A DNA stretch of 64,000 bases, taken from Anaeramoeba ignava BMAN (lineage: Eukaryota > Protista > Anaeramoebae). A model generated the notes under the pieces. The model had not been told where the DNA came from. It ran no database searches and saw nothing but the letters and a program-made list of their open reading frames with translations. This document shows positions 20,404-63,659 of the stretch, piece after piece. The stretch lies in contig JAPDFW010000026.1 in assembly GCA_028826165.1 (NCBI GenBank), positions 5,761 through 69,760 on the forward strand. The letters are read 5' to 3'. Both the position numbers and the translations under genes were made by a program. Each line of letters begins with the position of its first letter. Positions within the stretch are counted from its first letter, which is position 1.

Positions 20404-23400
20404 TTATTTGAAATTAAATTTGAAACTGAAAAAGTTTTGGTATTTCAAAATCAAAACGGAAGCGATCGCAGCAGGAACACCATAATATAAAAGTTTTGAA
20501 AGATCTTTCTTGTCTTGTTCTTGTTCTTTTTCTTCGATTTGAGAAGGAAAATCGATTCTGTCTTGTTGAAGTAAATTTTCCCATTTTTTGATTTCTTCAT
20601 TCAATGAACCGAAGCTTGATTTTTGTGTTACAATTTCTGTAGCTATTTTCTTTGATTCCTCTTCAATAGATTTTTGGTAAACACCGACATCACCAAGCCA
20701 AATATGGTCTTTATGGTAGTTTTTCAAGCTATCTTGAATTTTTTGATTTTCTTTTGTGATTAATTCATATTCGTTTTCGATTGATTTGTATTTTTCTTGT
20801 TTTCTAACCAATTTCATCTGTAATTGTTGCAAAGTTTTTTTTGTTTCTGCAATTTGCTGGTCTATTACCTTTGCATTTGGATCGAGGTTTTGGTTTTGAT
20901 TTTGATCTCTGGTTTTGGAACGCAGATCTTTAATCAATTGGGTCAATTCCTTTGTTCTTTCAATTGCGGAATTTTTTTGGGTTTCAAAAGTTTGCATCAT
21001 TTTATCGTGATTTAAACGGTAGTTTGTTGCTGATTGTTTGGATTTCTCGAGTTTTTTTTGGAGTCTTTTCACTTCTTTTGATTCGGTTTCTTTTTTTTGT
21101 TTTATTGTGTCGATTTGTTGTTGGAGGTATTTTGCGCGTTTAATTTTAGTTGCTGAGACACTTTTTGTAAGGAGTTGCATTTTTTCTTTTTTAGGTGTTT
21201 TTGGTTCTCTTATTGTTTCCTTTATTTTATAAATAATTTTATAAATTAATAAATAATTTTATAAATAATTTAATAAATAATTTAATAAATAAATTAATAA
21301 ATAAATAAATCAATAATTTAATAAATAAATCAATAATTTAATAAATAAATTAATAAATAAATTAATAAATAAATTAATAAATAAATTAATAAATAAATTA
21401 ATAAATAATTTTATAAATAATTTAATAAATAATTTAATAAATAATTTTATAAATAAATTAATAAATAAATTAATAAATAAATTAATAAATAATTTTATAA
21501 ATAATTTAATAAATAAATTAATAAATAAATTAATAAATAAATTAATAAATAATTTAATAAATAATTTAATAAATAATTTAATAAATAATTTAATAAATAA
21601 TTTAATAAATAAATTAATAAATAAATTAATAAATAAATTTAATAAATAAATTAATAAATAAATTAATAAATAAATTAATAAATAAATTAATAAATAATTT
21701 AATAAATAATTTAATAAATAAATTAATAAATAAATTAATAAATAAATTAATAAATAATTTAATAAATAATTTAATAAATAAATTAATAAATAAATTAATA
21801 AATAATTTAATAAATAATTTAATAATTAATTTAATAAATAATTTAATAAATAATTTAATAAATAATTTAATAAATAATTTAATAAATAAATTAATAAATA
21901 ATTTTATAAATAAATTAATAAATAATTTTATAAATAAATTAATAAATAATTTAATAAATAAATTAATAAATAAATTAATAAATAATTTTATAAATAATTT
22001 AATAAATAATTTAATAAATAATTTTTATAAATAATTTAATAAATAATTTAATAAATAATTTTATAAATAATTTTATAAATAATTTTATAAATAATTTTAT
22101 ATATAAATTAATAAATAAATTAATAAATAATTTAATAAATAATTTTATAAATAATTTTTATATATAAATTAATAAATAAATTAATAAATAAATTAATAAA
22201 TAATTTAATAAATAAATTAATAAATAATTTAATAAATAATTTAATAAATAAATTAATAAATAATTTAATAAATAATTTAATAAATAAATTTATAAATAAT
22301 TTAATAAATAAATTAATAAATAATTTAATAAATAAATTAATAAATAAATTAATAATAAATAAATTTAATAAATAAATTAATAAATAAATAAATTAATTAA
22401 TAAATAAATTAATAAATAATTTAATAAATAAATTAATAAATAAATTTAATAAATAATTTTATAAATAATTTAATAAATAATTTAATAAATAATTTAATAA
22501 ATAAATTAATAAATAAATTAATAAATAAATAAATTAATAAATAAATTAATAAATAAATAAATTAATAAATTAATAAATAATTTAATAAATAAATTAATAA
22601 ATAAATTAATAAATAAATAAATTAATAAATAATTTTATAAATAAATTAATAAATAAATTAATAAATAAATAAATTAATAAATAAATAAATTAATAAATTA
22701 ATAAATAATTTAATAAATAAATTAATAAATAAATTAATAAATAAATAAATTAATAAATTAATAAATAATTTAATAAATAAATTAATAAATAAATTAATAA
22801 ATAAATAAATTAATAAATAAATTAATAAATAAATTAATAAATAAATAATTTAATAAATAAATTAATAAATAAATTAATAAATAAATAAATTAATAAATAA
22901 AATAATTAATAAATAAATTAATAAATAAATTAATAAATAATTTAATAAATAAATTAATAAATAAATTAATAAATAATTTAATAAATAAATATATAAATAA
23001 ATTAATAAATAAATTAATAAATAAATCAATAATTTAATAAATTAATAAATAAATTAATAAATAAATTAATAAATAATTTAATAAATAAATTAATAAATAA
23101 ATTAATAAATAATTTTATAAATAAATTAATAAATAATTTAATAAATAAATTAATAAATAAATTAATAAATAAATTAATAAATTTATAAATAATTTAATAA
23201 ATAAATTAATAAATAATTTAATAAATAATTTAATAAATAATTTTATAAATAATTTTATAAATAATTTAATAAATAATTTTATAAATAATTTAATAAATAA
23301 TTTAATAAATAATTTAATAAATAATTTAATAAATAATTTAATAAATAATTTAATAAATAATTTAATAAATAAATTAATAAATAAATTAATAAATAAATTA

Positions 23401-25235
23401 ATAAATAAATTAATAAATAAATTAATAAATAAATTAATAAATAAATTAATAAATAAATTAATAAATAAATTAATAAATAATTTAATAAATAATTTAATAA
23501 ATAATTTAATAAATAATTTAATAAATAATTTAATAAATAATTTTATAAATAAATTAATAAATAATTTAATAAATAATTTAATAAATAAATTAATAAATAA
23601 ATTAATAAATAAATTAATAAATAAAATTAATAAATAAATTAATAAATAAATTAATAAATAAATTAATAAATAAATTAATAAATAAATTAATAAATAAATT
23701 AATAAATAAATTAATAAATAAATTAATAAATAAATTAATAAATAAATTAATAAATAAATTAATAAATAAATTAATAAATAAATTAATAAATAAATTAATA
23801 AATAATTTAATAAATAATTTAATAAATAATTTAATAAATAATTTAATAAATAATTTAATAAATAATTTAATAAATAAATTAATAAATAATTTAATAAATA
23901 ATTTAATAAATAATTTAATAAATAATTTAATAAATAATTTAATAAATAATTTAATAAATAAATCAATAAATAATTTAATAAATAAATAAATAAATAATTT
24001 AATAAATAAATTAATAATTAATTTAATAAATAATTTAATAAATAAATTAATAAATAATTTAATAAATAAATTAATAAATAAATTAATTAATAATTTAATA
24101 AATAAATTAATAAATAAATTAATAAATAATTTAATAAATAAATTAATAAATAATTTTATAAATAAATTAATAAATAAATTAATAAATAATTTTATAAATA
24201 AATTAATAAATAATTTTATAAATAAATTTAATAAATAAATTAATAAATAATTTTATAAATAATTTAATAAATAAATTAATAAATAATTTAATAAATAAAT
24301 TTAATAAATAATTTAATAAATAATTTAATAAATAAATTAATAAATAATTTAATAAATAAATTAATAAATAATTTAATAAATAAATTAATAAATAATTTTA
24401 TAAATAATTTTATAAATAAATTAATAAATAATTTAATAAATAATTTAATAAATAATTAAATAAATAAATTAATAAATAAATTAATAAATAATTTAATAAA
24501 TAAATTAATAAATAAATTAATAAATAAATTAATAAATAAATTAATAAAATAAATTAATAAATAATTTAATAAATAATTTAATAAATAAATTAATAAATAA
24601 ATTAATAAATAATTTTATAAATAAATTAATAAATAATTTTATAAATAAATTAATAAATAATTTAATAAATAATTTAATAAATAATTTAATAAATAATTTA
24701 ATAAATAAATTAATAAATAAATTAATAAATAATTTAATAAATAATTTTATAAATAATTTTATAAATAAATTAATAAATAATTTAATAAATAAATTAATAA
24801 ATAATTTAATAAATAAATAAATAAATAATTTAATAAATAAATTAATAAATAATTTATTCCCCTTTTTATTTAAGTTTTTGTTTTTTTGTTTTTGTTTTTG
24901 CTTTATTTTGTTTTTGTTTATTTGTGTAAATTTACCTGTTTTAAATTGATAATACTCTTTGAAATCTCGTTAATTTGTTTATTATCTTCTGTTAAAAACT
25001 CTTTTTTCGTATTTAATGTGGAAATTAAATTTTGGTTTCTTTCCATTAAATTTTTCATTTGTTCGTTTCTAAAATCAATTTCTGTTTCAATAAATTGAAT
25101 TTCAGAATCAACATTTAAGCGTTTTGTTTGGTGTTTCTTCTTAATTGAAAGAAAAAGACAATTCTGTTTAAGAATTAAATTATCAAGTTGAGAAATTTGA
25201 TTTTGAAGATTTTGTGTTTGTAATTGATTTGTCAT
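20404..25235 (-). CDS. Coiled-coil protein with C-terminal membrane anchor (2 exons, ~371 aa)
   Basis: Exon 1 25235-24936 (CAG|GTAAAT), intron 24935-21220, exon 2 21219-20404 in frame (ETIREPKTPKKEKMQLL...). C-terminal hydrophobic LLYYGVPAAIASVLIL followed by a short basic tail. Confidence 0.75.
21225..24856. repeat. 12-mer repeat (AATAAATAAWTT)n filling a 3.7-kb intron
   Basis: Directly visible. Confidence 0.95.
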
Positions 25236-46422: not shown

Positions 46423-48207
46423 ATGAATGAAATTTTATTTTTTGGTTTAAATAAATATCCAACTCTTTTCAAAAACAAATCAATTACAATAGCAAAACCA
46501 ATTCAATTTAAATTTGAAAATGAAAATGAGAATGAAAATGAAAATGAAAAACAAATTAAACAAATTTCATCAAGTGTTTATTCAACAATTTTCCTTTTTG
46601 AAAATGGAAAAGCAATAGAATATTTAAATGAAAATGATTCAAATCAAAATATTGAAAAAATCCAAATTGAAGAAAATGTTCAAAAAGTAACTGTTGGATC
46701 TGAAAATGAAACTATTTTAACAATAGAAGGAAATGTATTTGCAAAAGGAAATAATATTAATTCAAATGATCCAAATGAATTTATCAATATTTCATCATTA
46801 ATTGAAGATACAAATGATAGAATAATTCAAGATATTGTTTCTGGAGCTCAATCAATTTATTTATTAACTTCAAATCAAAATGCTTATGGATTTGGTTCAA
46901 ATGAATATGGTCAACTTGGTTTTGATTCTAAAACACTTAAAGAAACAAAAAAACCAATTTTAATGATGAAAAATGTTTCTAAAATATTTTCAGGAAATTC
47001 TTCTTATTATGTTTTTCTTTTAAATTCAAATCAAGAATTATTTGGATGTGGCTATAATGAGTATTATCAACTTGGATTAGGAGAATCAAGAAAAGAAACA
47101 AAAATCCATAAATTAACCAAAATCCAAAATATTCCAAAAGGCGAAATAATTGATATTCAAACTGGGAATTCCCATTCAATAATGTTGATTGAAAATGAAA
47201 ATGAAAATCCAAAAAGAAAACTTTATTCATGTGGATTTTATCAATATAATGGACTTGGCAAAAAAGGAAATACTTATGAATTTACTGAAATCAAATCATC
47301 TTTATTTGAAAATGATGATATTATTCTTCAATTTTTTGTTGGAGGTTACCATACTTTGATTTTAACTTCTAATTCAAAATTAATTGGATTTGGAGATAAT
47401 TTTTATGGTGAATTAGGAACTGGAGATACGAAATATCAATTAATTCCAATTCAAATTAAACTTCCTAAATTAAGATTTAATGAAAATATTTCTAATTATC
47501 GTTTTTCTTGTGGATATTTTAATTCATTTCTTTATTATTCTCTTTCTCCTTTTTCCAATCTTGAAGAAGATTTGATAAAACTATTTAGAAGAAAAGAATT
47601 TTGCAATATTTCATTTAAAACCAAAAATGAAGAAATAATCAAAGCTCATAAATTAATATTGAAATATAGATTAAATCAAAATGAAAATCAAATTGAAAAA
47701 CTTAAAGAAATTATTTCAAAAAAATCAATTAAAGAATCAAATCAAATATTTGAAATGATTTATTCAAATAATTCCAAAATAAATCCAAAATTATATTTTG
47801 AAATTAAAGAAATTATAAATTCAAATGAAAAAATTGAAGAAACAATGAAAAGAATTTATTTAAATGAAAATGAAAATGAAAATGAAAAAGATTTTATAAT
47901 TGAAAGAAAAGAAAAACAATATAAATTTCCTAAACTAATATTAGTAATGAGAAGTGAATTATATAGAGGAATGTTTTTATCTGTAACAGAAGATACTTCT
48001 AATAAAGTTACAGATTATAGTGAATTAAGTAATAAATCATTTCAAATATTTGAATATTGGATTTATTCAAATCAAATTAAAGATGAAATTCAAATTACAC
48101 AAGAAATCATTAATGAAATTCAAATAGGAATTGATTATTTTCAATTAAATCAAACAAATCCAAATTTAATTGATTTATTAATTAACAAATTTAATAATCA
48201 AAATTAA
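46423..48207 (+). CDS. RCC1-repeat beta-propeller + tandem BTB protein, copy 1
   Basis: GSNEYGQLG, GDNFYGELGTG, VGGYHTLIL; AHKLILKYR; RSELYRGMF...WIYS. Confidence 0.92.
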   Translation: MNEILFFGLNKYPTLFKNKSITIAKPIQFKFENENENENENEKQIKQISSSVYSTIFLFENGKAIEYLNENDSNQNIEKIQIEENVQKVTVGSENETILTIEGNVFAKGNNINSNDPNEFINISSLIEDTNDRIIQDIVSGAQSIYLLTSNQNAYGFGSNEYGQLGFDSKTLKETKKPILMMKNVSKIFSGNSSYYVFLLNSNQELFGCGYNEYYQLGLGESRKETKIHKLTKIQNIPKGEIIDIQTGNSHSIMLIENENENPKRKLYSCGFYQYNGLGKKGNTYEFTEIKSSLFENDDIILQFFVGGYHTLILTSNSKLIGFGDNFYGELGTGDTKYQLIPIQIKLPKLRFNENISNYRFSCGYFNSFLYYSLSPFSNLEEDLIKLFRRKEFCNISFKTKNEEIIKAHKLILKYRLNQNENQIEKLKEIISKKSIKESNQIFEMIYSNNSKINPKLYFEIKEIINSNEKIEETMKRIYLNENENENEKDFIIERKEKQYKFPKLILVMRSELYRGMFLSVTEDTSNKVTDYSELSNKSFQIFEYWIYSNQIKDEIQITQEIINEIQIGIDYFQLNQTNPNLIDLLINKFNNQN

Positions 48208-48314
48208 AATTAAAATTAAAATTAATTTAAAAATTAAAATTAAAATTAAAATTAAAATTAAAATTAAAATTAAAAATTAATTTTTCATTTTTTCCATTTT
48301 TTTTCTTTTCAAAA

Positions 48315-50083
48315 ATGAATGATTGTTTATTTTTTGGTTTAAATGAAAATCCAAAACTTTTCAAAAATGAACCAAATAAAATAACAAAACCAATTCAATT
48401 TAAATTTAAATTTGAAAATGAAAATGAAAATGAAAAACAAATTAAACAAATTTCATCAAGTGTTTATTCAACAATTTTCCTTTTTGAAAATGGAAAAGCA
48501 ATAGAATACTTAAATGAAAATGATTCAAATCAAAATATTGAAAAAATCCAAATTGAAGAAAATATTCAAAAAGTATCTGTTAATATTCAAAATGTAGTTA
48601 TTTTAACAAAGAAGGAAATGTATTTACCAAAAAAAATATTAATCCAAATAATCCAAATGAATTTATCAATATTTCATCATTAATTGAAGATACAAATGAT
48701 AGAATAATTCAAGATATTGTTTCTGGATCTAAATCAATTTACTTATTAACTTCAAATAATATAGTTTATGGAATTGGTTCAAATGGTTATGATCAACTTG
48801 GTTTTGATCCTAATACATCTTATAAAGCAGAAAAACCAATTTTAATGATGAAAAGCGTTTCTAAAATATTTTCAGGAAATTCTTCAAATCATGTTTTTCT
48901 TTTAAATTCAAACCAAGAATTATTTGGATGCGGATATAATAATAGTCAACTTGGATTAGGAGAATCAAGAAAAGAAGAAACAAAAATCCAAAAATTAACC
49001 AAAATCCAAAATATTCCAAAAGGCGAAATAATTGATATTCAATGCGGATTGCTTTATTCAATAATGTTGATTGAAAATGAAAATGAAAATTCAAAAAGAA
49101 AATTTTATTCATGTGGGAAATATCTTTTTATTGGACTTGGCCAAAATAAAAATACTTATGAATTTACTGAAATCAAATCATCTTTATTTGAAAATGATGA
49201 TTATATTCTTGATTTTTCTGTTGGATGGTTTCATACTTTGATTATAACTTCCAAAGGGAAAATGATTGGATTTGGAGGTAATTATCATGGAGAATTAGGA
49301 ATTGAAGATACAAATAGTCAATTAATTCCTATTCAAATTAAACTTCCTAAATTAAGATTTAATGAAAATATTTCCAATTATCATGTTTCTTGTGGAACTC
49401 ACAGATCATTTCTTTATTATTCTCCTTCTTCTTTTTCCAATCTTGAAGAAGATTTGATAAAACTATTTAGAAGAAAAGAATTTTGTGATATTTCATTTAA
49501 AACAGAAAATGGAGAAATAATCAAAGCTCATAAATTAATATTAAAATATAGATTAAATCAAAATCAAAATCAAATTGAAAAACTTAAAGAAATTATTTCA
49601 AAAAAATCAATTAAAGAATCAAATCAAATATTTGAAATGATTTATTCAAATAATTCCAAAATAAATCCAATTTTATATTCTGAAATTAAAGAAATTATAA
49701 ATTCAAATGAAAAAATTGAAGAAACAATGAAAAGAATTTATTTAAATGAAAATGAAAATGAAAAAGATTTTATAATTGAAAGAAAAGAAAAACAATATAA
49801 ATTTCCAAAATTAATATTAATAATGAGAAGTGAATTATATCGAGGAATGTTTTTATCTGTAACAGAAGATACTTCTAATAAAGTTACAGATTATAGTGAA
49901 TTAAGTAATAAATCATTTCAAATATTAGAATATTGGATTTATTCAAATCAAATTAAAGATGAAATTCAAATTACACAAGAAATAATTGATGAATTAGAAA
50001 GGGGAATTGATTATTTTCAATTAAATGAAACAAATCTAAATTTATTTGATTTATTAATTAACAAATTTAATAATCAAAATTAA
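48315..50083 (+). pseudogene. RCC1-BTB copy 2 with a single -1 frameshift at ~48608-48610 (pseudogene or consensus error)
   Basis: TTAACAAAGAAGGA here versus TTAACAAAAGAAGGA in copy 3; restoring one A joins ORFs 48315 and 48845. Confidence 0.7.
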
Positions 50084-50283
50084 AATTAAAATTAAAATTT
50101 AAATTAAAATTAAAATTAAAATTAAAATTAAAATTAAAATTAAATTCAAAATTAAAATTAAAATTAAAATTAAAATTATAATTAAAATTAAAATTAAAAT
50201 CAAAATTAAAATTAAAATCAAAATTAAAATTAAAATTAAAATTAAAATTCCAAAATTATTTTTTCATTTTTTTCTTTTCAAAA

Positions 50284-52077
50284 ATGAATGAAATTTTATT
50301 TTTTGGTTATAATCGATTTCCAACTCTTTTCAAAAACAAACCAAATACAATAACAAAACCAATTCAATTTAAATTTGAAAATGAAAATGAAAATGAAAAT
50401 GAAAAACAAATTAAACAAATTTCAATCACAAAATTTTCAACAATTTTCCTTTTTAAAAATGGAAAAGCAATAGAATATTCCAGACAAAATATTGAAGAAA
50501 TCCAAATTGAAAATATTCAAAAAGTATCTGTTGGATCTGAAAATGAAGCTATTTTAACAAAAGAAGGAAATGTATTTGCCAAAGGAAAAGATATTAATTC
50601 AAATGATCCAAATGAATTTATCAATATTTCATCATTAATTGAAGATACAAATGATAGAATAATTCAAGATATTGTTTCTGGAGCTCAATCAATTTACTTA
50701 TTAACTTCAAATCAAAATGCTTATGGATTTGGTTCAAATGAATATGGTCAACTTGGTTTTGATTATGAAACACTTAATGAAACAAAAAAACCAATTTTAA
50801 TGATGAAAAATGTTTCTAAAATATTTTCAGGAAATTCTTCAAAACATGTTTTTCTTTTAAATTCAAATCAAGAATTATTTGGATGCGGAACAAATGAATG
50901 GGGTCAACTTGGATTAGGAGATACAGAAAGAGAATGGAAAATCCAAAAATTAACCAAAATCCAAAATATTCCAAAAGGCAAAATAATTGATATTCAATGT
51001 GGATATAATCATTCAATAATATTGATTGAAAATGAAAATCAAAATGAAAATCCAAAAAGAAAACTTTATTCATGTGGAGTTTATTATATTAATAGAACTG
51101 ATGACGAAGATGAAAATACTAATGAATTTACTGAAATCAAATCATCTTTATTCGAAAATGATTATATTATTGAAATTTCTGTTGGAAATGCACATGGTTT
51201 AATTTTAACATCCAAAGGGAAATTAATTGGATTTGGAGATAACGAATATGGTCAATTAGGAACTGGAGATACAGAAGATAAATTAATTCCAATTCAAATT
51301 GAACTTCCTAAATTAAGATTTAATGAAGATATTTCCAATTATCATATTTCTTGTGATAATTTTTATAAATCATTTCTTTATTATTCTCCTCCTTCTTTTT
51401 CCAATCTTGAAGAAGATTTGATAAAATTATTTAGAAGAAAAGAATTTTGTGATATTTCATTTAAAACCAAAAATGGAGAAATAATTGAAGCTCATAAATT
51501 AATATTGAAATATAGATTAAATCAAAATGAAAATGAAATTGAAAAACTTAAAGAAATTATTTCAAAAAAATCAATTAAAGAATCAAATCAAATATTTGAA
51601 ATGATTTATTCAAACAATTCCAAAATAAATCCAATTTTATATTCAGAAATTAAAGAAATTATAAATTCAAATGAAAAAATTGAAGAAACAATGAAAAGAA
51701 TTTATTTAAATGAAAATGAAAAAGATTTTATAATTGAAAGAAAAGAAAAACAATACAAATTTCCTAAACTAATATTAATAATGAGAAGTGAATTATATCG
51801 AGGAATGTTTTTATCTGTAACAAATGATACTTCTAATAAAGTTACAGATTATAGTGAATTAAGTAATAAATCATTTCAAATATTAGAATATTGGATTTAT
51901 TCAAATCAAATTAAAGATGAAATTCAAATTACACAAGAAATTATTGATGAAATTGAAACAGGAATTGATTATTTTCAATTAAATCAAACAAATCCAAATT
52001 TATTTGATTTATTAATTAACAAATTTAATAATCAAAATCAAAATCAAAATCAAAAAGAAAAATGTTTAATTTTTTAA
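50284..52077 (+). CDS. RCC1-BTB copy 3 with C-terminal CaaX motif (CLIF)
   Basis: 597-aa ORF paralogous to copies 1 and 2; ends QKEKCLIF*. Confidence 0.92.
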   Translation: MNEILFFGYNRFPTLFKNKPNTITKPIQFKFENENENENEKQIKQISITKFSTIFLFKNGKAIEYSRQNIEEIQIENIQKVSVGSENEAILTKEGNVFAKGKDINSNDPNEFINISSLIEDTNDRIIQDIVSGAQSIYLLTSNQNAYGFGSNEYGQLGFDYETLNETKKPILMMKNVSKIFSGNSSKHVFLLNSNQELFGCGTNEWGQLGLGDTEREWKIQKLTKIQNIPKGKIIDIQCGYNHSIILIENENQNENPKRKLYSCGVYYINRTDDEDENTNEFTEIKSSLFENDYIIEISVGNAHGLILTSKGKLIGFGDNEYGQLGTGDTEDKLIPIQIELPKLRFNEDISNYHISCDNFYKSFLYYSPPSFSNLEEDLIKLFRRKEFCDISFKTKNGEIIEAHKLILKYRLNQNENEIEKLKEIISKKSIKESNQIFEMIYSNNSKINPILYSEIKEIINSNEKIEETMKRIYLNENEKDFIIERKEKQYKFPKLILIMRSELYRGMFLSVTNDTSNKVTDYSELSNKSFQILEYWIYSNQIKDEIQITQEIIDEIETGIDYFQLNQTNPNLFDLLINKFNNQNQNQNQKEKCLIF

Positions 52078-52213
52078 AATTAAAATTAAAATTAAAATTA
52101 AAATTAAATTCAAAATCAAAATCAAAATTAAAAATTAAAATTAAAATTAAAATTAAAATTAAAATTAAAATTAAAATTAAAATTAAAAATTGTTTTCTTT
52201 TCTTTTCTTTGAT

Positions 52214-53559
52214 TTAAATTTTATTTCCTGCTCTTGCAATTGGGAAAATAATTTCAGAAAGTTCAAAAGGAAGAATTTTTTGAATAAAATCTTTAAGATC
52301 TTCTTCTTCTTTTTCTTCAGAAATAAATCTTTGATTTTTCATTAAAGAAAAAAAATGTAAATGAGAAATATAATCATTTTCATTTGATAATTGATGAATA
52401 TCATTTGATAATTGTTCAAAAAATAAAGGAGTTAATTTTAAAATTTGAATCATTGCATCTTCTTCAATTCTAAGTTTACAAAATTGTGAAAATATTTTTC
52501 TTGTTAAACTTCTTGGAAATTCAGGTTTTGAATGAATTTTTTGTCTTTTATGATTTTGATTTTGATTTTGATTTTGATTTTCATTTTCATTTTCATTTTG
52601 ATTTTGATTTTGATTTTTATTTTCATTTTGATTTTCATTTTGATTTTCATTATTTTCTAAATTTTCTTCAATTTTTCTTTTTGTTTGTATTTTTTCAAAT
52701 CTTTTTTTTAATGGATTTTTAAATGATAAAGTTTGTGATTTATTGAAATTCATTTTGTTAATAAATTTAGAAATATTTTCTTTTTTTTCAAATTGATTTT
52801 TTTGAATTGGATTAAAATTAAAAGGAATTCTAAGTTGATGAAGATCCAAAAATCTTTGAATATTTGAACTTTCTTGATTTGTAAATGATAATTGATATTG
52901 TTTTTTAGGTGAATTTATGATTTCTAATTCTTGAATATCATTTCTAAAAATAAATTAAAAATAAATTAAAAATAAATTAAAAATAAAATTATAAATATTT
53001 ACGAATCACTTTCAAGATTGAAATTATCTTCTCCATCAGAACTAAAATCTGAAGTATTTAAATTAAAATCAATATTTTCCACATTTTGAATTAGATTATT
53101 TTCATTTTCATTTTCATTTTCATTTTCATTTTCATTTTCATTTTCATTTTCATTTTCATTTTTAATTTCAATTTTTTTATTAGAAATTTGTCTAAAATTT
53201 GGATTTAAAGGATGTTTTGAAGTTTTAACTTTTTATTTGTTTGTTTGTTTAAAAGAAAAGAAAAGAAAAGAAAAGATTAAATTTAAAAAATTTAAAAAAT
53301 TTAATAAATAATATTTTTACTAGCTTTTGCTTGAATTATTTTTTGAATTAATGCTTTTGGTGTTTGAATAGGACTTGGTGTAAAATTTGTTGAAAAATTT
53401 TTATTATTTCTTTTATTTAATGAATTTAATTTATTATTTTGAATATTTTGAATTTTGAATATTTTGATTTTGATTTTGATTATTAATATTAATATTAGAA
53501 GGAGTTAAAATATTTGAAAGAGAACGAATTAAAGATCTTGGTGTTTTATAAACACTCAT
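52214..53559 (-). CDS. CENPT: Centromere protein T (CENP-T) homologue
   Basis: C-terminal histone fold plus extension FPRSLTRKIFSQFCKLRIEEDAM...FFEQLSNDI...LMKNQRFI...ILPFELSEIIFPIARAGNKI (cf. CENP-T LPLEYRQLLIPCAYSGN). N-terminal TPRSLIRSL and TPKALIQKII motifs. Introns 53320-53229 and 53002-52944; one indel near 53450. Confidence 0.8.
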
Positions 53560-53794
53560 TTTTTAATAATTATTATTATTAAAAAATAAAAAAATAAAAA
53601 ATAAAAAAATAATTTTAATTTTAATTTTAATTTTAATTTAATTTTTTTAACGGTTTTCTTTTCTTTTCTTTTCTTTTCTAATTTAAATAAAAAATAAAAA
53701 TAAAAAAGTGGAATAAAAATAAAGTGGAATTTTGAATTAAAAAATAAAGGATTTTATTATTAAAAGTAAAATAAAATTGAATTAAAAAGAAATT

Positions 53795-54816
53795 TTAATC
53801 TGAATTAGAATTAGAATTAGAATTTGAATTAGAATTTGAATTAGAATTAGATTTAGATTTTGATTTAGATTTAGAATTAGAATTAGAATTAGAATTAGAT
53901 TTAGAATTAGATTTAGATTTAGATTTAGATTTAGATTTAGATTTAGATTTAGATTTAGATTTAGATTTAGATTTAGAATTAGAATTAGAATTAGAATTAG
54001 ATTTAGAATTAGATTTGTTATCTTCTTTTGTTTCTATATCTTGATTTAAATTAGTTTGATTAATTTGAAAAGGAATTTTAATTCCAGTTTGTTTTGACAT
54101 CGAAGAAATTCTTTTATTAATTTCATTCTTTATTCTTTCAATTTCATTTTGAATTTCATTACTATTTTTTTCAAAAAGTTTTGCATTTTGATTTGGTTTT
54201 TTTTCTAAAGTTAATCTAATTTGATCCATTTTATCTTTAATTGATTTTTATTTAAATCTAAATCTAAATTTAAATCTTTTTTTTTTCTTCTTTGGTTTTA
54301 ATTGGATTTTTATGATGTTTTTAACATTAATTTCTTTTTATTCTTTTCATTCTTAATATTTTGTTGATGTTTTTTTGCTCCAATTTTATGTTTATGTTCT
54401 TTTTATCTAAATTTAAATTATTATTTGATTTTTTCTTCATTTTCTTCTTTTTATTCTTGAAGCTTTTCTTGGTTTAGGGATTCATTAAATCATTCAAACT
54501 AGTTTTTAAAATTTTTTTTCTTATGTTTATCTTCTTCAATTCTTTTTATTTTTCTTTTTTGATTTTTTATCTTTTTTGATTTGGATTTTTGTGATAAATT
54601 TTCTCCAATTTTTGAATATGTTTTTGGTTCTTGATTTTGATTAAATGATTGTGAATCAGGAAGTAATTCCATTGTTTGATGTATTATTAATCTTGCTTGT
54701 GTTAATGTTGATAAGTATATATTTGTTAATTCTTTAATTTTTTGTTTTAATTGCTCATTTTCTTTTTTTAATTCTAAATTTTGTTTTTTAATTTCTTCAT
54801 TTTCTTTTTGATTCAT
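53795..54816 (-). CDS. Hypothetical coiled-coil protein with SK/SN tail (ORFs 54499 and 53795 probably one gene broken by indels)
   Basis: Two collinear ORFs with coding-like K/N-rich sequence between them; Inr-like motif upstream at ~54862. Confidence 0.45.
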
Positions 54817-54908
54817 TTTTTTAATTATTATTTTAATTATTTTTATTTTTAAAAAGAAAAAAAATGAAAAAATTTTTTTTGCTTTTTTTATTTTTTTTAT
54901 TTTTGGAT

Positions 54909-57900
54909 TTAAAAATTTGATTTTAAATTATCAATATGATCTCTTAAAAAACTCCTTTCATTTAATTGATAAAAATCTTGAAGTTCTTCTAAATCATCAT
55001 AAATAGATTCTTTCATTCCATAATCAATTTCATCATAATATAAAAATTTAATAAAATAAGATAATGATTCATTTGATTTATCACTATAATCATTAACCCT
55101 ATTAGAATTATCATTAACACTAACAAACATTCCTCTAAAAAGTTCACTTCTTGCTTGTAAAATTAATTTATGAACTTTGATTTCTTTATCTTCACTTATT
55201 ATTATAAAATCTTTTCCATTTTTCATCTTCATATAATTTTTAAATCTTCAATTAATCCTTTTCTTTCCTTCTTTTTAATCCATTCTTCATTTTCTTCAAT
55301 TCCTTCGCAAATTCATTAATAATTTCATAATTTCTTTGATAATCATTTTCCTTAATTAATCCTGAATAAATAAATTTAAGAATAATTTCAATTTCAAATT
55401 TTCGTTTTTCTTTAAGAAATTAATTGCTTTTCAAATTTTGTTTCTCCAATTCTTGTTTGTAATATTAATTTATGAACTGGAATAACACAATCTTTCAATT
55501 TAATTTCATAATCACAAAATTCTCTCCTCTTTTAAATAATTTTCCAATATCTTCACAAACACTTTCAAATCTTTCAAAAATTCTTTTACTTCTTGATTAT
55601 AAATTTACAATCAACTGGTTTTTCATTCTTTTTATATTTTAATAATTTAATAATTTAATAATTTAATAATTTAATAATTTAAGAAAATTTACATACTAAA
55701 TAAATTATAAATAAATTAATAATTAAAATGATTATAATTTTTTAAATTTACATTCTTTTTTTTTAAATTTTTAATATTTAATAATAATATTTTTAATATT
55801 TTTAATTTTATACATTTTTAAATGAATTTCTGAACCAAATAAACATAACCAATAAATTGATTGTAAATTTTTATAATTTCTACAAGTAAAATGAAGTGGT
55901 GTATCTTTCTAATTAAATTTAAAAACAAGGGAAGATATTTTTTAAATTTATTTTTAAATTTTCTTTATTTTCTTTTACATCCTTTTATTAAAATAATAAT
56001 TAAAGATTAAATTTTCCCCTAATTTTATAAAAAGAAAAAAATTTTATAATTTTACTTTCTAAAAAAATTAATTATAAATTAAATTAAAAATAAAGATTTA
56101 ATTAATACATTAATAACATTTATCTTTGCTCCAATAGAAACAAGAAAATGAATAAAATTTGAATCTCCTAATAAACAAGCAAAATGAAGAGGTGTTTCTC
56201 CCTAATTTATTTTGAAAGAGAAAATATTATTTTCATTAAATAAAAATTAATAAAAATATTACCATCTAAAATATAAAAATAATAATAATAATAATAATAT
56301 AAAAATAAAATATTATTAAAATATTATTTACTTTCTAATATAAAAATAATAAAAAATTTAAATTAAAATTTTTTACAAAATTTAAAATACATTTTGACAA
56401 TTAATATCAGCTCCTGATTTAATTAATAATTCAACAATATTTTGTGAAGATCCTGATTTACAATATAAATGAAGTGGAAAATTTCCTAAATTTATTAATA
56501 ATTAATTTTTAATTTTAAAATTTTAAAATATAAAAGAAAAACAAACTCTCTAAATATAAATATAATAAATATATAATAATAAATATAAAAATAATTTTAA
56601 TATTTTTCTCTTTTTAAAAATTTTTGTTATAAATTTTATTACATTCTAATTTAAATTTCAAAATTAATTTATTAATAAATTTTTAAATTTTAATTTAAAT
56701 TTTTACATTTGGTTGATTAATTCCAATTTTATTTGAAACAAGAACTTCAATAAATTTTAAATCATTTTTTGATTTTCAAGTGCAAAAATGTAATGGAATA
56801 TTATCCTATTAAAATATTAAAATAAAATTTATTCTAATAATAATAATAATAAATTAAGTTTTATTTACAAACTATAAAATAATTTTAAATTCATTTTCTT
56901 TCTTTTAAATTAAAATAAAATGAATTACATTCTTTATTTTTATATTTAAATTAATATTTTAAATTTTAAAAATTTATTATTATTCAAAATACATCTTTTT
57001 CATCAATTTTTGCACCTGCTTTAATTAAACATAATACAATTTCATAAGATGATTTTTGACAAATTAAATGAAGAGGTGTAAATCCTTTTATTTTATAAAA
57101 TATTTCATTTTTAATTCTAAACAAAATTTTTATAATTTAATTAAATAAAAATTATAATATACTTTCTAATAAAAATTATAAATATTTCAATATTATTTCT
57201 AAAATGAAAATTTTTACATCCTAATCAAAAAATATTTAAAATTAAATTTTAATATATTTAAATTAAATTTATTTAATAAATACATCTTTTAAATTAACAT
57301 CAGCTTTTAGCTTCAATTAATAACTTTATAATCATAAAGAGATGGAGTTTTACCAAAACAGACATTATGTAATGGTGTTCTTTTTCATTATTAAATTCAT
57401 TATAAATTCATTATAAATTCATTTTTGGAAAAAATATATAAAATTATTACTCTCTATTTTTATTGGAATTAATTAATTTATTAATTTTACTTTTTCTTTT
57501 AAAAATATAAATCTTCAAACATCCTTTTATTTTTTAAATAATTAATTAGAAAAGAAAAAAATATTATTATTTTTAATATATAAAATTTTACATTTTGAAT
57601 ATTAACATCATTAGTTGATAAAATTAATAATTTAATTAATTCATCTGATAAATTAAAAGCACAAGCATTATAGTGATGTATTTTCCTAATAAAATAGTAA
57701 AATAAAATAAAATTTAATTTTATTTAATAAAATAATAATATAAAATGAAATAAAATACATCCTTTTATTTTATTTTTAAAAACAATTAAAATTAGTTTAT
57801 TTAAATATAAATTTTATATTTTTACTTTCTAAAAAGAAAAATTTTTAAATAAACATTTTCCAAAAATATAAAAAAAAAAAGATTTTTTCTTTTCAAAATT

Positions 57901-58921
57901 AAAAATACATCTTGTAAATTAGCATTTGCTCCAGATTTAATAAATTCAATTATATTTTATCTAATTTATTTTTACAAGCTGAATGAAGTGGTGAATCATT
58001 CTTTTTAATAATTAATTAATTAATAAATTAATAAATAAATTTATAATTTATTATAAATACTCACATATTTTTATATTTAATTTTAATTTTAATTTTAATT
58101 TTAATTTTAATTTTAATTTTAATATTTTACATCCTTTTTTATTGTTAAAATTAATTTTAATTTAATAAAAATTGTTTTTATAAATCTTAAATCAAACATC
58201 AAGAGAATTAACAATAGCTCCTGCTAATATTAATTTTCAAAAACAAATGGTGCTTTACTTTACAACAAAAATGTAATGGGTTGCATTCTTTTAATTGAAA
58301 AATTTTATTATATTTATTATTATTATTATTTTTGTAAAATATATAAAAATAAATTACATACTTTTTCATTTAAAAATATAATTTTAATTTTAATTTTTAA
58401 TTTTAATTTTATTTAATAAATTATTTTTAATACATTCTAAAATAAAAATTAAAAGGAAAAAGAAAATATTTTTAATTTTTAATATTTTTTTAATATTTTT
58501 TTAATACATTTTTGCATTTGGATCTGCTCCAATGAAATAAAATAATCAATAAACTTCAAATCTGCTCAAATTTACAAAATACATGAAGTGGTGTTTCATT
58601 CTAAATATAAATAATTTAATATTTAATTAAATAATTATTTTTATTAAAAATTATTTTTACATACTTTTTAAAAATAATATTAAAAAGAGAAAAAGTATGT
58701 AAAAAAAAACTCAATTTGCAATTTAAATTTTTATTTTAAAATAATTTTTAAATTGAATTTTTTACATTCTAAAAGTGTATTTATTTATTAATTTTAATAA
58801 ATAAAATTTATAATTTTTAATTTAAATTTTACATATCTTATTGAAATATTTTTCTTTTTGTAATATTATTTTTAATTTCTTTTAAATCTCCTTTTCTTAT
58901 TAATTGATTTAAATTTATCAT
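54909..58921 (-). CDS. Ankyrin-repeat (10 repeats) + tandem BTB protein encoded by ~34 exons including 22 single-codon microexons
   Basis: N-cap exon 58921-58833; ANK exons 58600-58508, 58287-58198, 58000-57909, 57685-57592, ~57385-57284, 57084-56993, 56805-56707, 56485-56391, 56201-56109 (clean 93 nt: GETPLHFACLLGDSNFIHFLVSIGAKINVIN), 55908-55814; terminal exon 55627-54909 with two BTB domains (VHKLILQTR, VHKLILQARSELFRGMF). Several 1-nt indels. Confidence 0.85.
55628..58832 (-). other. Array of paired 3-nt microexons (AG|NNN|GT) between ankyrin exons
   Basis: Plus-strand pattern ac-NNN-ct at 58766-8 (AAT), 58661-3 (TAT); 58434-6 (AAT), 58358-60 (TAT); 58131-3 (GAT), 58061-3 (degenerate); 57826-8 (AAA), 57759-61 (GAT); 57521-3 (GAT), 57451-3 (AGA); 57218-20 (GAT), 57163-5 (AAA); 56929-31 (AAT), 56869-71 (TTT); 56643-5 (AAT), 56547-9 (AGA); 56332-4 (AAA), 56263-5 (ATG); 56056-8 (AAA), 55979-81 (GAT); 55752-4 (AAT), 55693-5 (TAT). 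Confidence 0.88.
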
Positions 58922-59170
58922 AATTTTTGTTTGAAAAAAAATGAAAAAAATGAAAAAAAAAATTTAAATTAAAAATTTTTATTTTTTATTTATTTATAAA
59001 GGAAAATCCACTTTTTCTTTTCTTTTCTTCTTCTTATTAAAATTTCTCAAATAAAATCAAAATAAATTCATATTGGATTTTATTAAATTTTATTAAATTT
59101 TTATTAAATTTAATTGAATTTTATTAAATTTTTATTAAATTTAATTGAATTTTATTAAATTTTTTGGAAA

Positions 59171-62100
59171 TTAATCTGAGTAAATATTATTAAGAAATTT
59201 TGTTTCATCATAAAATTCGCAAGTAATAACATTTCCTCCAAAATATCGATTATCTAAAGAAAATTGAGCTTTATCAGCATTTTCCAAATTTTGATATAAA
59301 ATGAAAATTTTAATATTTTCTTTTTTTTCTTTTTTAGAATTTGATTTATTAGAACTTTGATAAACATAAATATCTTGAATAATTCCAAATTTTGAACATT
59401 CTTCATAAACTTCCCTTTCAAGATCTTCATCAACTTCATTTGAATCAACCATATTTTGTAAACAATACATCGCAGAAGTAGGTTTTTCTTTTCTTTGATA
59501 GTCTTTGGATTGATTATTGATGTCTAGTATTTGTATCAATATGTGAATCATCAAGTTTTTCCATTTCTTCTTGATTTTTTAAGTGATTTTGATTAAATTG
59601 ATTTTGATTAAATTGATTTTGGATTAAAGTGATTTTGATTAAATTGATTTGGATTAAATTTAGATTTGAAGTATTGATTTGGTTTTGGTCGATTTAAATT
59701 GATTTTTGATTAAGTGTTTGTAATTAAATTGATTTGGATTAAAATTGGTCGATTTTTAGATTTTAAATAAATTTGATTTCGAAAAATGATTTTTTAAAAA
59801 TGAGATTTGGAAAATGATTTTGATTAAATTGATTTTGGAAAAATGGATTTTGATTAAATTGTGATTTAGGTGGAGTTTTTGAATTTTTATTTGATGGTTT
59901 GACTTTTAATTGTTTTTCCTGCTAATTCAAATCCATCCATTTGATCAAGTGCTTTTTGTGCTGATTCTTCATTCTCAAATTGAATAAATACATCCTCTGT
60001 GTGTTCCTTTTTGTTTATCAATCTCTTTAAATTGTGATTAAATTAAATTAAAATTAAATTGATTAAATTAAAATTAAATAAAATGTAAATTAAAATTAAA
60101 TTAAATTAAATTAAATTAAATGAATTAAATTAAAATTGAATTGAAATTAAAATTGGAATTTAATGTTAGATAATTGGGCATGATTTAATTTTTCCAAAAC
60201 TCAAAAATTTTGTTCTAAATTTTCATTTGTATTATTTCAATTATTAGATCAAATATAAATTGTTCTTTTTTGAAATTTGATAATCCATTAAAATTTTGTG
60301 ATTCTGATTTGTGATCCGTTGATTGTGATTCTGATTGTGATTCTGATAAAAAGCATTATGAGTCAAATACCATTGAATTTTTGGTTTTTCATGAACTATG
60401 AAAAAATAAATTGAGTCTATCAATTCTTTGCTCTTTTAGCTGATTTATGAAATGAATATTCAATAAAAGACAAATCTTTATGTTTGTTTTGTTGTTGGTT
60501 ATTCTATTTAAAATTTAATAAATTTTAATAAATTTATTTAATTTAATAAATTTTATTCCACTTTTTAAAAATCTATATTATAGTATAAATAAAATAATAA
60601 ATTCAAATCTAAAATTAAATATTAAATTAAATATTAAATTAAATATTAAATTAAAAAATTAAGAAATTAAAATAAACATACAAATGGCATATCCATGACT
60701 TTTAATTGGTCCAAAAGCTCAAAATAAATCTTTAATTTCTTTAATACTTGTATTATTATCCAATCAATTTTGAATAAATAATCTAATTTTTGAATTTTAA
60801 TTGTAATTCTTCTTGTGTTTTTAAATCTAAACGCAGTTTTTAGAAACTTGTTGACTTATTTTAATGAAATATTTCCATTCTAATAAAAATAGAATTAGAA
60901 AAAGAAAAATTTCCATTCATATATAATTATAATATATATTACAAAATAAATAAATAAATATTAAAAATATTAATAATTAAATAATAATTTAAATATTATT
61001 TAACTTTCTATTACTTATTCAATACTATTTTTATCAAAATAAATAATTTCTGTTTTTAAAATTAATTTAGGTAAATGGTCCTTATTTTTACTTCTAAATA
61101 TTATTTTCCAAATTATTTAATTTAATGAATTTAATTTTAAAGTTATGATTAATTACTGTTTGATTAGATTTTGCATTTGTAATATATTTTCATTGCTGTT
61201 CTTTTTCTGAATTCTGGCATAGAACTTGAAGAAGAATATCACTGAAGAGTATTATCATTTTCATTTGAAATTGTTGAATTCTTTGATTTTTATTTGAATT
61301 TCTTGATTCAATTTCCTTAAAATGATTTGATTTACTTTTGAATTTTGAATGATGATTGAAATGTGTTGATTTCTTTTTAAATGGATTGATTTGATGTGAA
61401 TTTCTAAAATGTGTGTATGTGTTGATTGATTTAAATGTTGATTGATTCAATTTTCTTGAATGATTTGATTTGACTTCAATTTGAATTTCTTGAATGATTT
61501 GAATTTCGAATTTCTTGAGAATGATTTGATTTACTTGAATTTTTGAATTTTTTGATTTGAATTTTTGAATGATGTGAAGATGATATGATGGATGATTTGA
61601 ATAATGTGAATGATGTGAATGATGTGAATAATGTGATTTAATTTCTTGAATGATTTTTGAATGATTTAAATATTGCTGATTGTTTGAATTTCTTTACGAT
61701 GATGTATATGTATTTGATTGATTTTAAATTTCTTTGAATGATGTGTATTGATTGATTTAAATGTGAAATTGTTGAATTTCTTGGAATGATGGAATGTGTG
61801 AAAAGAATTTAAATTGAATAGTGATTTCTTGTATGTGTTGATTGATTTAATTTTTGAATTATCTTTTTATTGATTTTCTTGAGTTTTTCTCTTTTCATGT
61901 TTTTTTCATTTTTCTCAATTTTGTTTCTTCTTTTTCTTTTTTTCTTTTAAATTTGTTTTTTTAAATTTGATTAATTATAGTTTTATTTTAATTTTTGATT
62001 TGAAATTGTTTGTTTTAGATCTAAAATCATTATTTGATGTTTTAAATTATCAATTTCATCTGATTTTCTTTGTTTTTGTTTTATCCATAATAGAATGTAA

Positions 62101-63266
62101 TTTTATTTTTTTGAGTTTTTCTTTTTTTTGATTTTTTCTTTTTATTATTTCTTTTTGAATTTCATTTTAGAATTTGATTTTGAATTGATTTTGAATTTGA
62201 ATTTGAAATTTGAATTTGAATTGGTGGTTTTTGATTCTCCTTTGATTTTTGAATTTGAATTTAATTTGAATAAATTTGATTTTGATTTTGATTTTGTTTT
62301 TAATTTGATTTTTAATTTGATTTTGAATTTTGATTTTGAAGTTGAATTTGATTTGATTTTGAAGTGAATTGATTTTGATTTTGATTTTGGATTTTAAATT
62401 ATCTTTTAAATTTGATTTTAAATTTTCTTTTAAATTTTTAAATTTTTTTTTTATCTTTTGATTTTTTTTGATTTTGAATTTGATTTTGAATTTTCTTTTA
62501 AATTTTCTTTTAAATTTTAAATTATCTTTTGATTTTTGATTTTGATTTTTGATTTTACGGGATTTTGATTTTGATTTTGAAGTTGATTTTTTTTAAGTTT
62601 TGATTTGATTTGATTTTGAAGTTGATTTTGAATTTAGTTTTGATTTTGAGTTTGATTTTCGTTGTTTGAGTTTTTATTTGAAGTTGATTTTGATTTTGAA
62701 GTTTTTTTTTCTTTCGAGTTTGAGTTTTTGAAGTTATTTTGTTTTAATTTTCTTTTTAATTTTTGTTGTTGATATTTTAATAAATCAATTTTTCTTTGTT
62801 TTTCTTTTAATCTTTCTTTGTTTTTGGATTTTTTGGGTCTTAAATTAAATTTTATTTTTTTTTTAAAAAGATTTCTTTTAAATTTTTGAATGTTTTGATC
62901 ATTTTCTTCCAATGATTTTTAATTTTTCTTTTAATTTCTTTTAATTGTTTTTTAATTGATTTCTGTTGATTCTGTTGTTTATTTTGAAGAAAAATTGTGA
63001 CTTTATTCAATTTATTTTTGAATGAATTTCATTTTAATTTAATTGAATTCAGATTACGCAGTTAATTTTTTGTTTTTAATTTGTTCATTCTTTTGATTGA
63101 TTCATTAATTGGTGATTGAAGATTTTGATAAATTTAAAGTTTTGATTTTATTTTATTTTATTTTTATTTTTATTTTTACTTTTTATTTGTTTTTTATAAT
63201 GATTTTTATTTGAAAAAGAATGTTTTTCTTTGAAGATTTATTTAAATTATGATTTTCTAAATCCAT
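59171..63266 (-). CDS. PUF60: PUF60/half-pint-like splicing factor (RRM-RRM-UHM) with long low-complexity N-terminus; many indels
   Basis: UHM: LQNMVDSNEVDEDLEREVYEECSKFG...IKIFI...LDNRYFGGNVITCEFYDETKF. RRM1 fragments AFGPIK and MDMPF|NNQQNKHKDLSFIEY (intron 60681-60504). RRM2 FIQFENEESAQKALDQMDGFELAGKTIK. The start at 63266 is tentative. Confidence 0.75.
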
Positions 63267-63659
63267 TTTAAATTTTATTTTTTTTAAATTTATATGTTTT
63301 TTAAAATGAAAAATGAAAAATGAAATTTTTAATTTTACGTTAAAGTTTTCCATGAAAGAAAAATTTGAAAGAAAATTTTTGAAAGAAAAAGAAAATTTTT
63401 GGAAAAGAAAGCATAAAAATCATTATTATCCAAAAATAACAATGATAATTGAATTTAAAAGTTAAAGAATGAGAGAAAAAATGGAAAAAGAAAAATCAAA
63501 ATCAAATTAATCAAAATGAATCAAATTAGATAAAAATATTGATGAATTGAATCAAATCAGGTCAAATTATCAAATTTATTGAATTAAATTAAATAAAATT
63601 AAATTGAATTTAATCAAATGCAATTAAATCAAAATCAGATCAAATTGAATTGAATTGAA

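Follow-up and report, generated by a model that had tools for sequence, protein, structure and literature searches.

Candidate pairs of single-codon exons at the repeat junctions of an ankyrin-BTB gene of Anaeramoeba ignava

Two putative 3-nt exons at each ankyrin junction

An ankyrin-BTB gene in a 64,000-nt stretch of the genome of the anaerobic amoeba Anaeramoeba ignava BMAN (positions 5,761–69,760 of contig C28; hereafter, the window) appears to carry, at every junction of the exons for its ankyrin (ANK) repeats, two codons that are set apart as exons of 3 nt. Judging from the sequence, we put the probability that both codons of a junction are kept in the mRNA as single-codon exons at about 75 per cent. 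The gene lies on the minus strand, with its ATG at 58921 and its stop codon at 54909–54911, in a very AT-rich region (guanine-plus-cytosine [GC] content of 13–17 per cent). A sequence-only reading of the window had reported two AG-NNN-GT sites in each of the 11 gaps between exons, 21 of them clean and one degenerate. Our recount on the minus strand gave the same 21 sites, two per gap save gap 3, in which the second site of the window copy reads ATG-TGA-GT, and the residue pairs listed for gaps 1 to 11 (N-Y, N-Y, D-?, K-D, D-R, D-K, N-F, N-R, K-M, K-D, and N-Y) were recovered unchanged. Across the window, AGNNNGTA is found 30 times on the minus strand, with 21 of these occurrences in three 2-kb bins spanning 54–60 kb, and 11 times on the plus strand.

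When the genome was searched with the undamaged C-terminal BTB part of this gene, more than 2,200 BTB candidates were obtained, among them a 99 per cent identical twin on contig C72 (locus L013). Every exon of the C72 copy is open: exon 0 has 87 nt, the last exon has 240 codons, and the ANK exons, all in phase 0, measure 96 nt in eight cases, 99 nt in one, and 93 nt in one. The microexon motifs are accompanied by flanking 3' and 5' splice sites at 22 of 22 positions in C72 and at 21 of 22 in the window.

The 11 gaps of the C72 copy are 187–249 nt long and contain 5 per cent G and 1.6 per cent C. They hold 23 AG-NNN-GT matches (the 22 sites plus one overlapping match), in comparison to 0.82 ± 0.88 motifs in dinucleotide-preserving shuffles of the same gaps (maximum of 5 in 2000 shuffles) and a single motif on their antisense strand, which bears out the earlier judgment that chance recurrence is implausible. 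The proposed division of each gap into three short GT-AG introns also holds, as 33 of 33 C72 sub-introns begin with GT (GTA in 29 of them), end with AG, and are 51–107 nt long. Published values for introns of A. ignava are a modal length of 76 nt and a GC content of 8.1 per cent. Each gap thus looks like three ordinary introns rather than one intron of triple size. Comparison of the 33 sub-introns with each other revealed no class-specific or within-junction similarity beyond composition (0.27–0.32 versus a null of 0.21 ± 0.07), and hence nothing to suggest that introns of the ankyrin-BTB gene were recently triplicated or belong to a mobile family. At about 1,960 places in the genome, two AG-NNN-GT motifs lie 45–105 nt apart, not all of which need be exons; a reversed-pattern control for this count is uninformative, as ATG-NNN-GA is common in coding sequence.

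The 3-nt pieces as probable codons

Because every junction is in phase 0, an open frame cannot decide the coding status of the 3-nt pieces, whereas other lines of evidence can. In an exon-by-exon scan of nine of the ten ANK exons (all but exon 7) with the PF00023 profile, eight matched, five of them above the 21.1-bit cut-off and with scores of up to 33.9 bits. The matches begin at profile position 2 or 3 and end at position 32 of 33, and therefore two positions (33 and 1) are unaccounted for at each junction. In ten ANK exons, the motif (T/S/I/F)(P/S)LH occupies residues 3–6. The sequence-only reading was thus right that each exon falls two residues short of a repeat, but its arithmetic of 31 + 2 = 33 is to be replaced by 32 + 2 = 34, because the C72 ANK exons are mostly of 96 nt (32 residues) and are joined by two codons. 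The ankyrin period is 34 residues with the microexons and 32 without them. In ANK-BTB paralogs that lack introns, the repeat recurs every 34 residues in 27 cases and every 35 in 15, so that a 32-residue exon plus two codons restores the period of the intronless paralogs. In the latter, the two residues in front of G/N-x-T-A/P-L-H are N, K, or D (80 per cent; position 33), followed by Q, Y, N, E, W, R, or K. Downstream of the repeats, residues 131–224 of the last exon match the BTB profile PF00651 (56.9 bits versus a cut-off of 20.5), and a second, upstream BTB-like region at residues ~20–110 was recognized by eye only.

To the C72 gene (L013) and two other loci (L024 and L018) we added 20 further ANK-BTB loci with a stand-alone BTB exon (L027–L046), for a total of 23 parsed loci. 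Exactly two motifs are present at 25 of the 29 simple junctions, where the 75 sub-introns are 51–101 nt long (median of 70 nt). The paralogs retain this layout despite being divergent and having introns of no mutual similarity. Exon and microexons add up to 34 residues in 19 of these 25 junctions. The first microexon codon specifies D, K, or N in 20 of the 25 (80 per cent), as at the matching position of the intronless paralogs, and TGG (W) appears three times as the second codon (position 34), where the intronless paralogs have W as well. None of the 50 surveyed microexon codons is a stop, versus 11.3 per cent stop trinucleotides in the gaps, and the trinucleotides ATT, TTA, TAA, and ATA, which together make up 36 per cent of the gap trinucleotides, are absent from the microexon codons. 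The GC content at positions 1, 2, and 3 of these codons is 0.38, 0.18, and 0.08, respectively. In the paralog P0001, which is 45 per cent identical in the BTB part, two motifs are found at three of three junctions, within introns that are unrelated.

The P0001 gene (L024, C35:663324–667043) has six AG-NNN-GTA candidates (CAA and AAA; AAA and ACT; AAC and AGT), and one of its introns is swollen by a ~500-nt satellite of the AAAATC type. When the ANK part of P0001 was used as a query, generic ankyrin proteins overwhelmed the results. In a more divergent ankyrin gene (L017, C1:698000–702500, minus strand), the junctions have zero, one, or two AG-NNN-GT candidates each, and at one junction without a microexon the flanking exon encodes the hairpin residue.

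A second species and other genes

The layout is also seen in Anaeramoeba flamelloides, whose mean amino-acid identity to A. ignava is, according to published values, only 37 per cent. The first A. flamelloides locus examined (L026) contained no ankyrin gene. The ANK-BTB gene of P0146 (476 residues over 16.5 kb, with multi-kb introns; locus L051, GCA_028892595.1 JAOAOG010000325.1:1759080–1781650) has two ATAG-NNN-GTA motifs upstream of each of three ANK exons, at distances of 84–101 and ~190–220 nt, and these pairs would encode N-K, G-K, and E-G. The P0146 introns contain 35 sense AG-NNN-GT(A/T) motifs versus 14 on the antisense strand, some of them in chains with a spacing of 100–170 nt, which suggests further, unannotated candidate microexons.

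In A. ignava, chains of 3-nt exons are likewise predicted in two tandem BTB-TLDc genes (L015, C1:1056500–1066499, minus strand; L016, C1:941000–944000), where they follow GPSFGC, a motif of the TLDc domain. Translated, the 48 chain codons give a run of hydrophobic residues (I/L/M/F); T occupies codon position 2 in 43 of them, and positions 1 and 3 vary. Such a bias is a coding signature and is difficult to account for unless the encoded residue is under selection.

An array of another kind was noticed in L014 (C1:407500–415500, minus strand, at about C1:409300–413130), downstream of a coiled-coil exon. It comprises ~30 near-identical introns of ~72 nt (GTAAATAATTAAAT...AATAAATAG), which are separated by variable 3-nt exons (CAA, TAT, CCA, AGA, GAT, CTT, and others) with zero stops; one unit holds a ~1-kb (ATT)n expansion.

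Public annotation and literature

The public annotation used RNA-seq reads mapped with HISAT2, as published. Five NCBI proteins (P0001, P0016, P0140, P0141, and P0143) consist, in their ankyrin parts, of 31–32-residue ANK units joined directly, which agrees with the expectation of the sequence-only reading that standard predictors would miss one-codon exons. When the P0001 model is compared to its DNA, the microexons are seen to be skipped. Short-read aligners like those behind the annotation are not known to place 3-nt exons, and we infer that the public models constitute weak evidence against inclusion.

That reading had also known of no prior description, and our full-text literature search found no paper linking Anaeramoeba and microexons; the word 'exon' is absent from the genome paper's supplementary note on introns. 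Nor did we come across an account of single-codon exons that recur as a fixed pair in each repeat, at one and the same structural site, throughout a large family and in two species.

Proposed splicing and its alternatives

In the explanation that we favor, and toward which each of our indirect tests points, an ankyrin repeat would be composed of one 96-nt exon (Ank positions 2–32) and two 3-nt exons, which would encode the residue pair that forms the tip of the hairpin between repeats (profile positions 33 and 1). Each junction would contain three GT-AG introns of about 50–110 nt, all in phase 0. Every short intron would be recognized separately (intron definition), as in other short-intron organisms, and then removed, with both codons staying in the mRNA. 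The removal would probably be ordered, since only 3 nt separate the 5' splice site of an intron from the 3' splice site of the intron before it. The mature product would be an ANK-BTB protein of ~640 residues, with 34-residue repeats like those of the intronless paralogs and with canonical hairpins. By eye, its N-terminus shows no obvious signal peptide. To judge by other BTB proteins, the ANK-BTB product probably acts as a cullin-3 substrate adaptor.

Several considerations weigh against the retention of both codons. Skipping of the microexons also leaves an open frame, as all introns are in phase 0, and the public annotation does exactly so. The 11 junctions of one gene are not independent of each other, because they arose by repeat duplication, and the 29 junctions of the paralogs derive from a heuristic exon parser. 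At a 3-nt exon, the 3' and 5' splice sites are within reach of each other, and ordered splicing must be assumed. The support from A. flamelloides comes from one gene, in which the motif background is higher (the 35 sense versus 14 antisense motifs given above).

It is conceivable, but in our assessment unlikely, that the AG-NNN-GT pairs are conserved and yet the mature mRNA joins the 96-nt exons directly, as the NCBI models do. In that case, either the whole ~200-nt gap would be excised in one piece or most transcripts would skip the microexons, and the motifs would have some other role, for example in splicing intermediates, as regulators, or as rarely used cassette exons. Such joining would preserve the frame throughout, given the phase-0 junctions; it is what the RNA-seq-guided gene models depict, and introns of several hundred nucleotides do occur in the same genes. 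However, it would produce 32-residue repeats that lack Ank positions 33 and 1, in comparison to 34 residues in the intronless paralogs, and it would leave unexplained why the codons avoid stops, why their residues fit those found at these positions in paralogs, and why the sub-introns have the modal intron size of the genome. The models themselves carry little weight on this point, since aligners of the kind used are not known to place 3-nt exons. Far less probable still is the notion that the motifs have no role in splicing and are due to chance or are a neutral relic that tandem duplication spread along with the repeat unit. Since all repeats in a gene have a common origin, one ancestral pair could have been copied 11 times; but the introns of this gene are alike only in composition and have nevertheless kept all 22 motifs, the layout recurs in paralogs of 30–45 per cent identity and in another species, and shuffling yields 0.8 motifs where 23 are seen.

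Retention of both codons, the explanation preferred here, could be extended into a genome-wide system of single-codon exons in Anaeramoeba, in which such exons would come as a pair at each ankyrin hairpin and, in other genes, as chains of dozens, and would be spliced combinatorially to vary the target-binding surface of the BTB adaptor family of more than 2000 members. The phase-0 junctions would allow any one codon to be kept or left out irrespective of the others. We regard this extension as speculative and rather improbable.

State of the window copy

As written, the window copy is not a working gene. The sequence-only reading had treated it as intact, and in this respect it was mistaken: the copy is untranslatable, and its exons differ from those of C72 by 23 mismatches and 25 insertions or deletions (indels), which comprise 17 deletions and 8 insertions in the window, mostly of 1–2 nt and located in homopolymers. 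The introns differ by 108 mismatches. Aligned over the whole window locus, the twin has 94 per cent identity, with 56 mismatches and 155 gap openings. An alternative genetic code and programmed frameshifting were both considered as causes of the frame breaks and were ruled out, since the standard code gives open frames for the C72 copy.

The region from 52,158 to 63,305 of the window is colinear, in reversed orientation, with C72:58,525–47,294, and identity to C72 declines from 94 to 93 to 82 per cent toward the end of contig C28, which has a total length of 69,760 bp. The assembly was built from Nanopore reads and processed with Racon, Nanopolish, and Pilon (PMC11550330). Because the differences are rich in indels and the copy is situated in the last ~12 kb of a 69.8-kb contig, a part that repeats a stretch of C72, the window copy is most likely a redundant, unpolished Nanopore contig end. 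It is less likely that it represents a genuine decayed duplicate (pseudogene) of the C72 gene and not an assembly artifact. Substitutions, and not indels alone, separate the two copies (the 23 exonic and 108 intronic mismatches), and the flanks beyond 52,158 lack colinearity with C72. Against decay, the exonic indels are as many as the substitutions and have the pattern of Nanopore errors (1–2 nt, in homopolymers, and biased toward deletions, 17 versus 8), the copy falls within the last 12 kb of a short contig along which identity sinks toward the end, and a frame of 2413 codons (7713–14954) remains unbroken elsewhere on the same contig.

Layout of the window copy

The following coordinates are those of the window, and all features of the gene are on the minus strand. 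In three-frame translation, the ANK exons of the window copy (90–101 nt) mostly switch frames internally, as does its first BTB region. Exon 0 (58833–58921) starts with the ATG at 58921 and has 89 nt, its frame being broken by a 2-nt insertion, in comparison to 87 nt (29 amino acids) in C72. It is followed by putative microexons 1a (58766–58768; AAT, N; context AG-AAT-GTA) and 1b (58661–58663; TAT, Y; context AG-TAT-GTA). ANK exon 1 (58508–58600) has 93 nt owing to three 1-nt deletions (96 nt in C72), and candidate microexons 2a (58434–58436; AAT, N) and 2b (58358–58360; TAT, Y) separate it from ANK exon 2 (58198–58287; 90 nt versus 96 nt in C72). Microexon 3a (58131–58133) would be GAT (D). 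At 3b (58061–58063), the window reads ATG-TGA-GT, which has no AG and contains a stop codon; C72 has AG-CGA-GTA (R) there.

ANK exon 3 (57909–58000; 92 nt versus 96 nt in C72) precedes candidates 4a (57826–57828; AAA, K) and 4b (57759–57761; GAT, D), and ANK exon 4 (57592–57685; 94 nt versus 96 nt in C72) precedes 5a (57521–57523; GAT, D, then GTT) and 5b (57451–57453; AGA, R). In ANK exon 5 (57284–57384), which measures 101 nt in the window and 99 nt in C72, the AG of the 3' splice site present in C72 is lost. Next come 6a (57218–57220; GAT, D), 6b (57163–57165; AAA, K), and ANK exon 6 (56993–57085; 93 nt versus 96 nt in C72), then 7a (56929–56931; AAT, N), 7b (56869–56871; TTT, F), and ANK exon 7 (56707–56805), which has 99 nt with an in-frame TGA in the window and is open over 96 nt in C72.

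Candidates 8a (56643–56645; AAT, N) and 8b (56547–56549; AGA, R), the latter with an overlapping AG-TTT-GT 4 nt downstream, lead to ANK exon 8 (56391–56486), which has 96 nt in C72; the window lacks one G at the splice acceptor, leaving 95 nt. Beyond 9a (56332–56334; AAA, K) and 9b (56263–56265; ATG, M) lies ANK exon 9 (56109–56201; 93 nt), the only ANK exon that is intact in both copies. The remaining features are 10a (56056–56058; AAA, K), 10b (55979–55981; GAT, D), ANK exon 10 (55814–55908; 95 nt versus 96 nt in C72), 11a (55752–55754; AAT, N), 11b (55693–55695; TAT, Y), and the last exon (54909–55627), which contains the two BTB-like regions and the stop codon at 54909–54911. Where C72 has an open frame of 240 codons, the last exon of the window copy carries about 10 indels, and only its final ~106 codons are open. 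An exact-protein look-up with one open reading frame of the window found no match on record.

Elsewhere in the window, three tandem RCC1-BTB-BTB genes of ~595 residues each are located at 46423–52077 on the plus strand, the middle one being split over two frames (48315–48683 and 48845–50083); C72 carries several paralogs of these genes with 85–90 per cent identity. Around 33154 on the plus strand, in a GC-richer block at 32–36 kb, there is an extra ANK-like exon (NLNTPLHFACETQTKK, followed by a stop), which may belong to another ankyrin gene with introns or frame breaks. Positions 22001–24000 have a GC content of 0.1 per cent, being practically all A and T over 2 kb.

Significance and comparison with known systems

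If RNA confirms the inclusion of these codons, 3-nt exons would be far more numerous in this genome than in any other described. Many models of A. ignava proteins would be off by two residues in each ankyrin repeat, and those of some genes by dozens of residues. The spliceosome would have to define 3' and 5' splice sites that are three nucleotides apart, twice in succession and routinely, and the organism would thereby offer a natural system in which to study intron definition and the ordering of splicing. It also raises the question of how three introns came to lie at consecutive codon boundaries, a question that links to the near-identical intron arrays elsewhere in the genome.

In animal ankyrin genes with one repeat per exon, the repeat is an exon flanked by phase-matched introns, an arrangement that favors repeat duplication. 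There, neighboring repeats have only one intron between them, and one exon encodes all 33 residues of a unit, including those of the hairpin. Recursive splice sites, in which AG and GT are juxtaposed as 'zero-length exons', are found in long introns of Drosophila and vertebrates. They resemble the arrangement described here in that, within an apparent single intron, a 5' splice site comes almost immediately after a 3' splice site. However, no nucleotides of a recursive site remain in the mRNA, and such sites serve long introns, whereas here the introns are short and AG never abuts GT, exactly 3 codon-like nucleotides lying between them at every site.

The micro-exon genes (MEGs) of Schistosoma mansoni contain runs of very short symmetric exons of 3–81 bp (PMC10526429). 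As in these genes, the exon lengths are multiples of three and skipping keeps the frame. MEGs, however, encode small secreted proteins, mostly from microexons, and have introns of up to 5 kb. The ankyrin-BTB gene falls outside the schistosome type: only 66 of about 1,900 coding nucleotides would be in microexons, each of them exactly 3 nt and at one fixed structural position of a folded repeat, with introns of ~70 nt and in a metamonad protist. That splicing can include exons of 3 nt, and that such exons escape annotation pipelines, is shown by reports on micro-Ex8 of Drosophila homothorax (PMC7392893) and on plant microexons (PMC8831610). These animal and plant examples are isolated and often alternatively spliced and tissue-regulated, whereas the candidates in the ankyrin-BTB genes come in pairs at every junction between repeats, throughout a large gene family. 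Animals and plants are thus known to have 3-nt microexons one at a time, and schistosomes to have genes of short symmetric exons; of a fixed pair per repeat we found no description.

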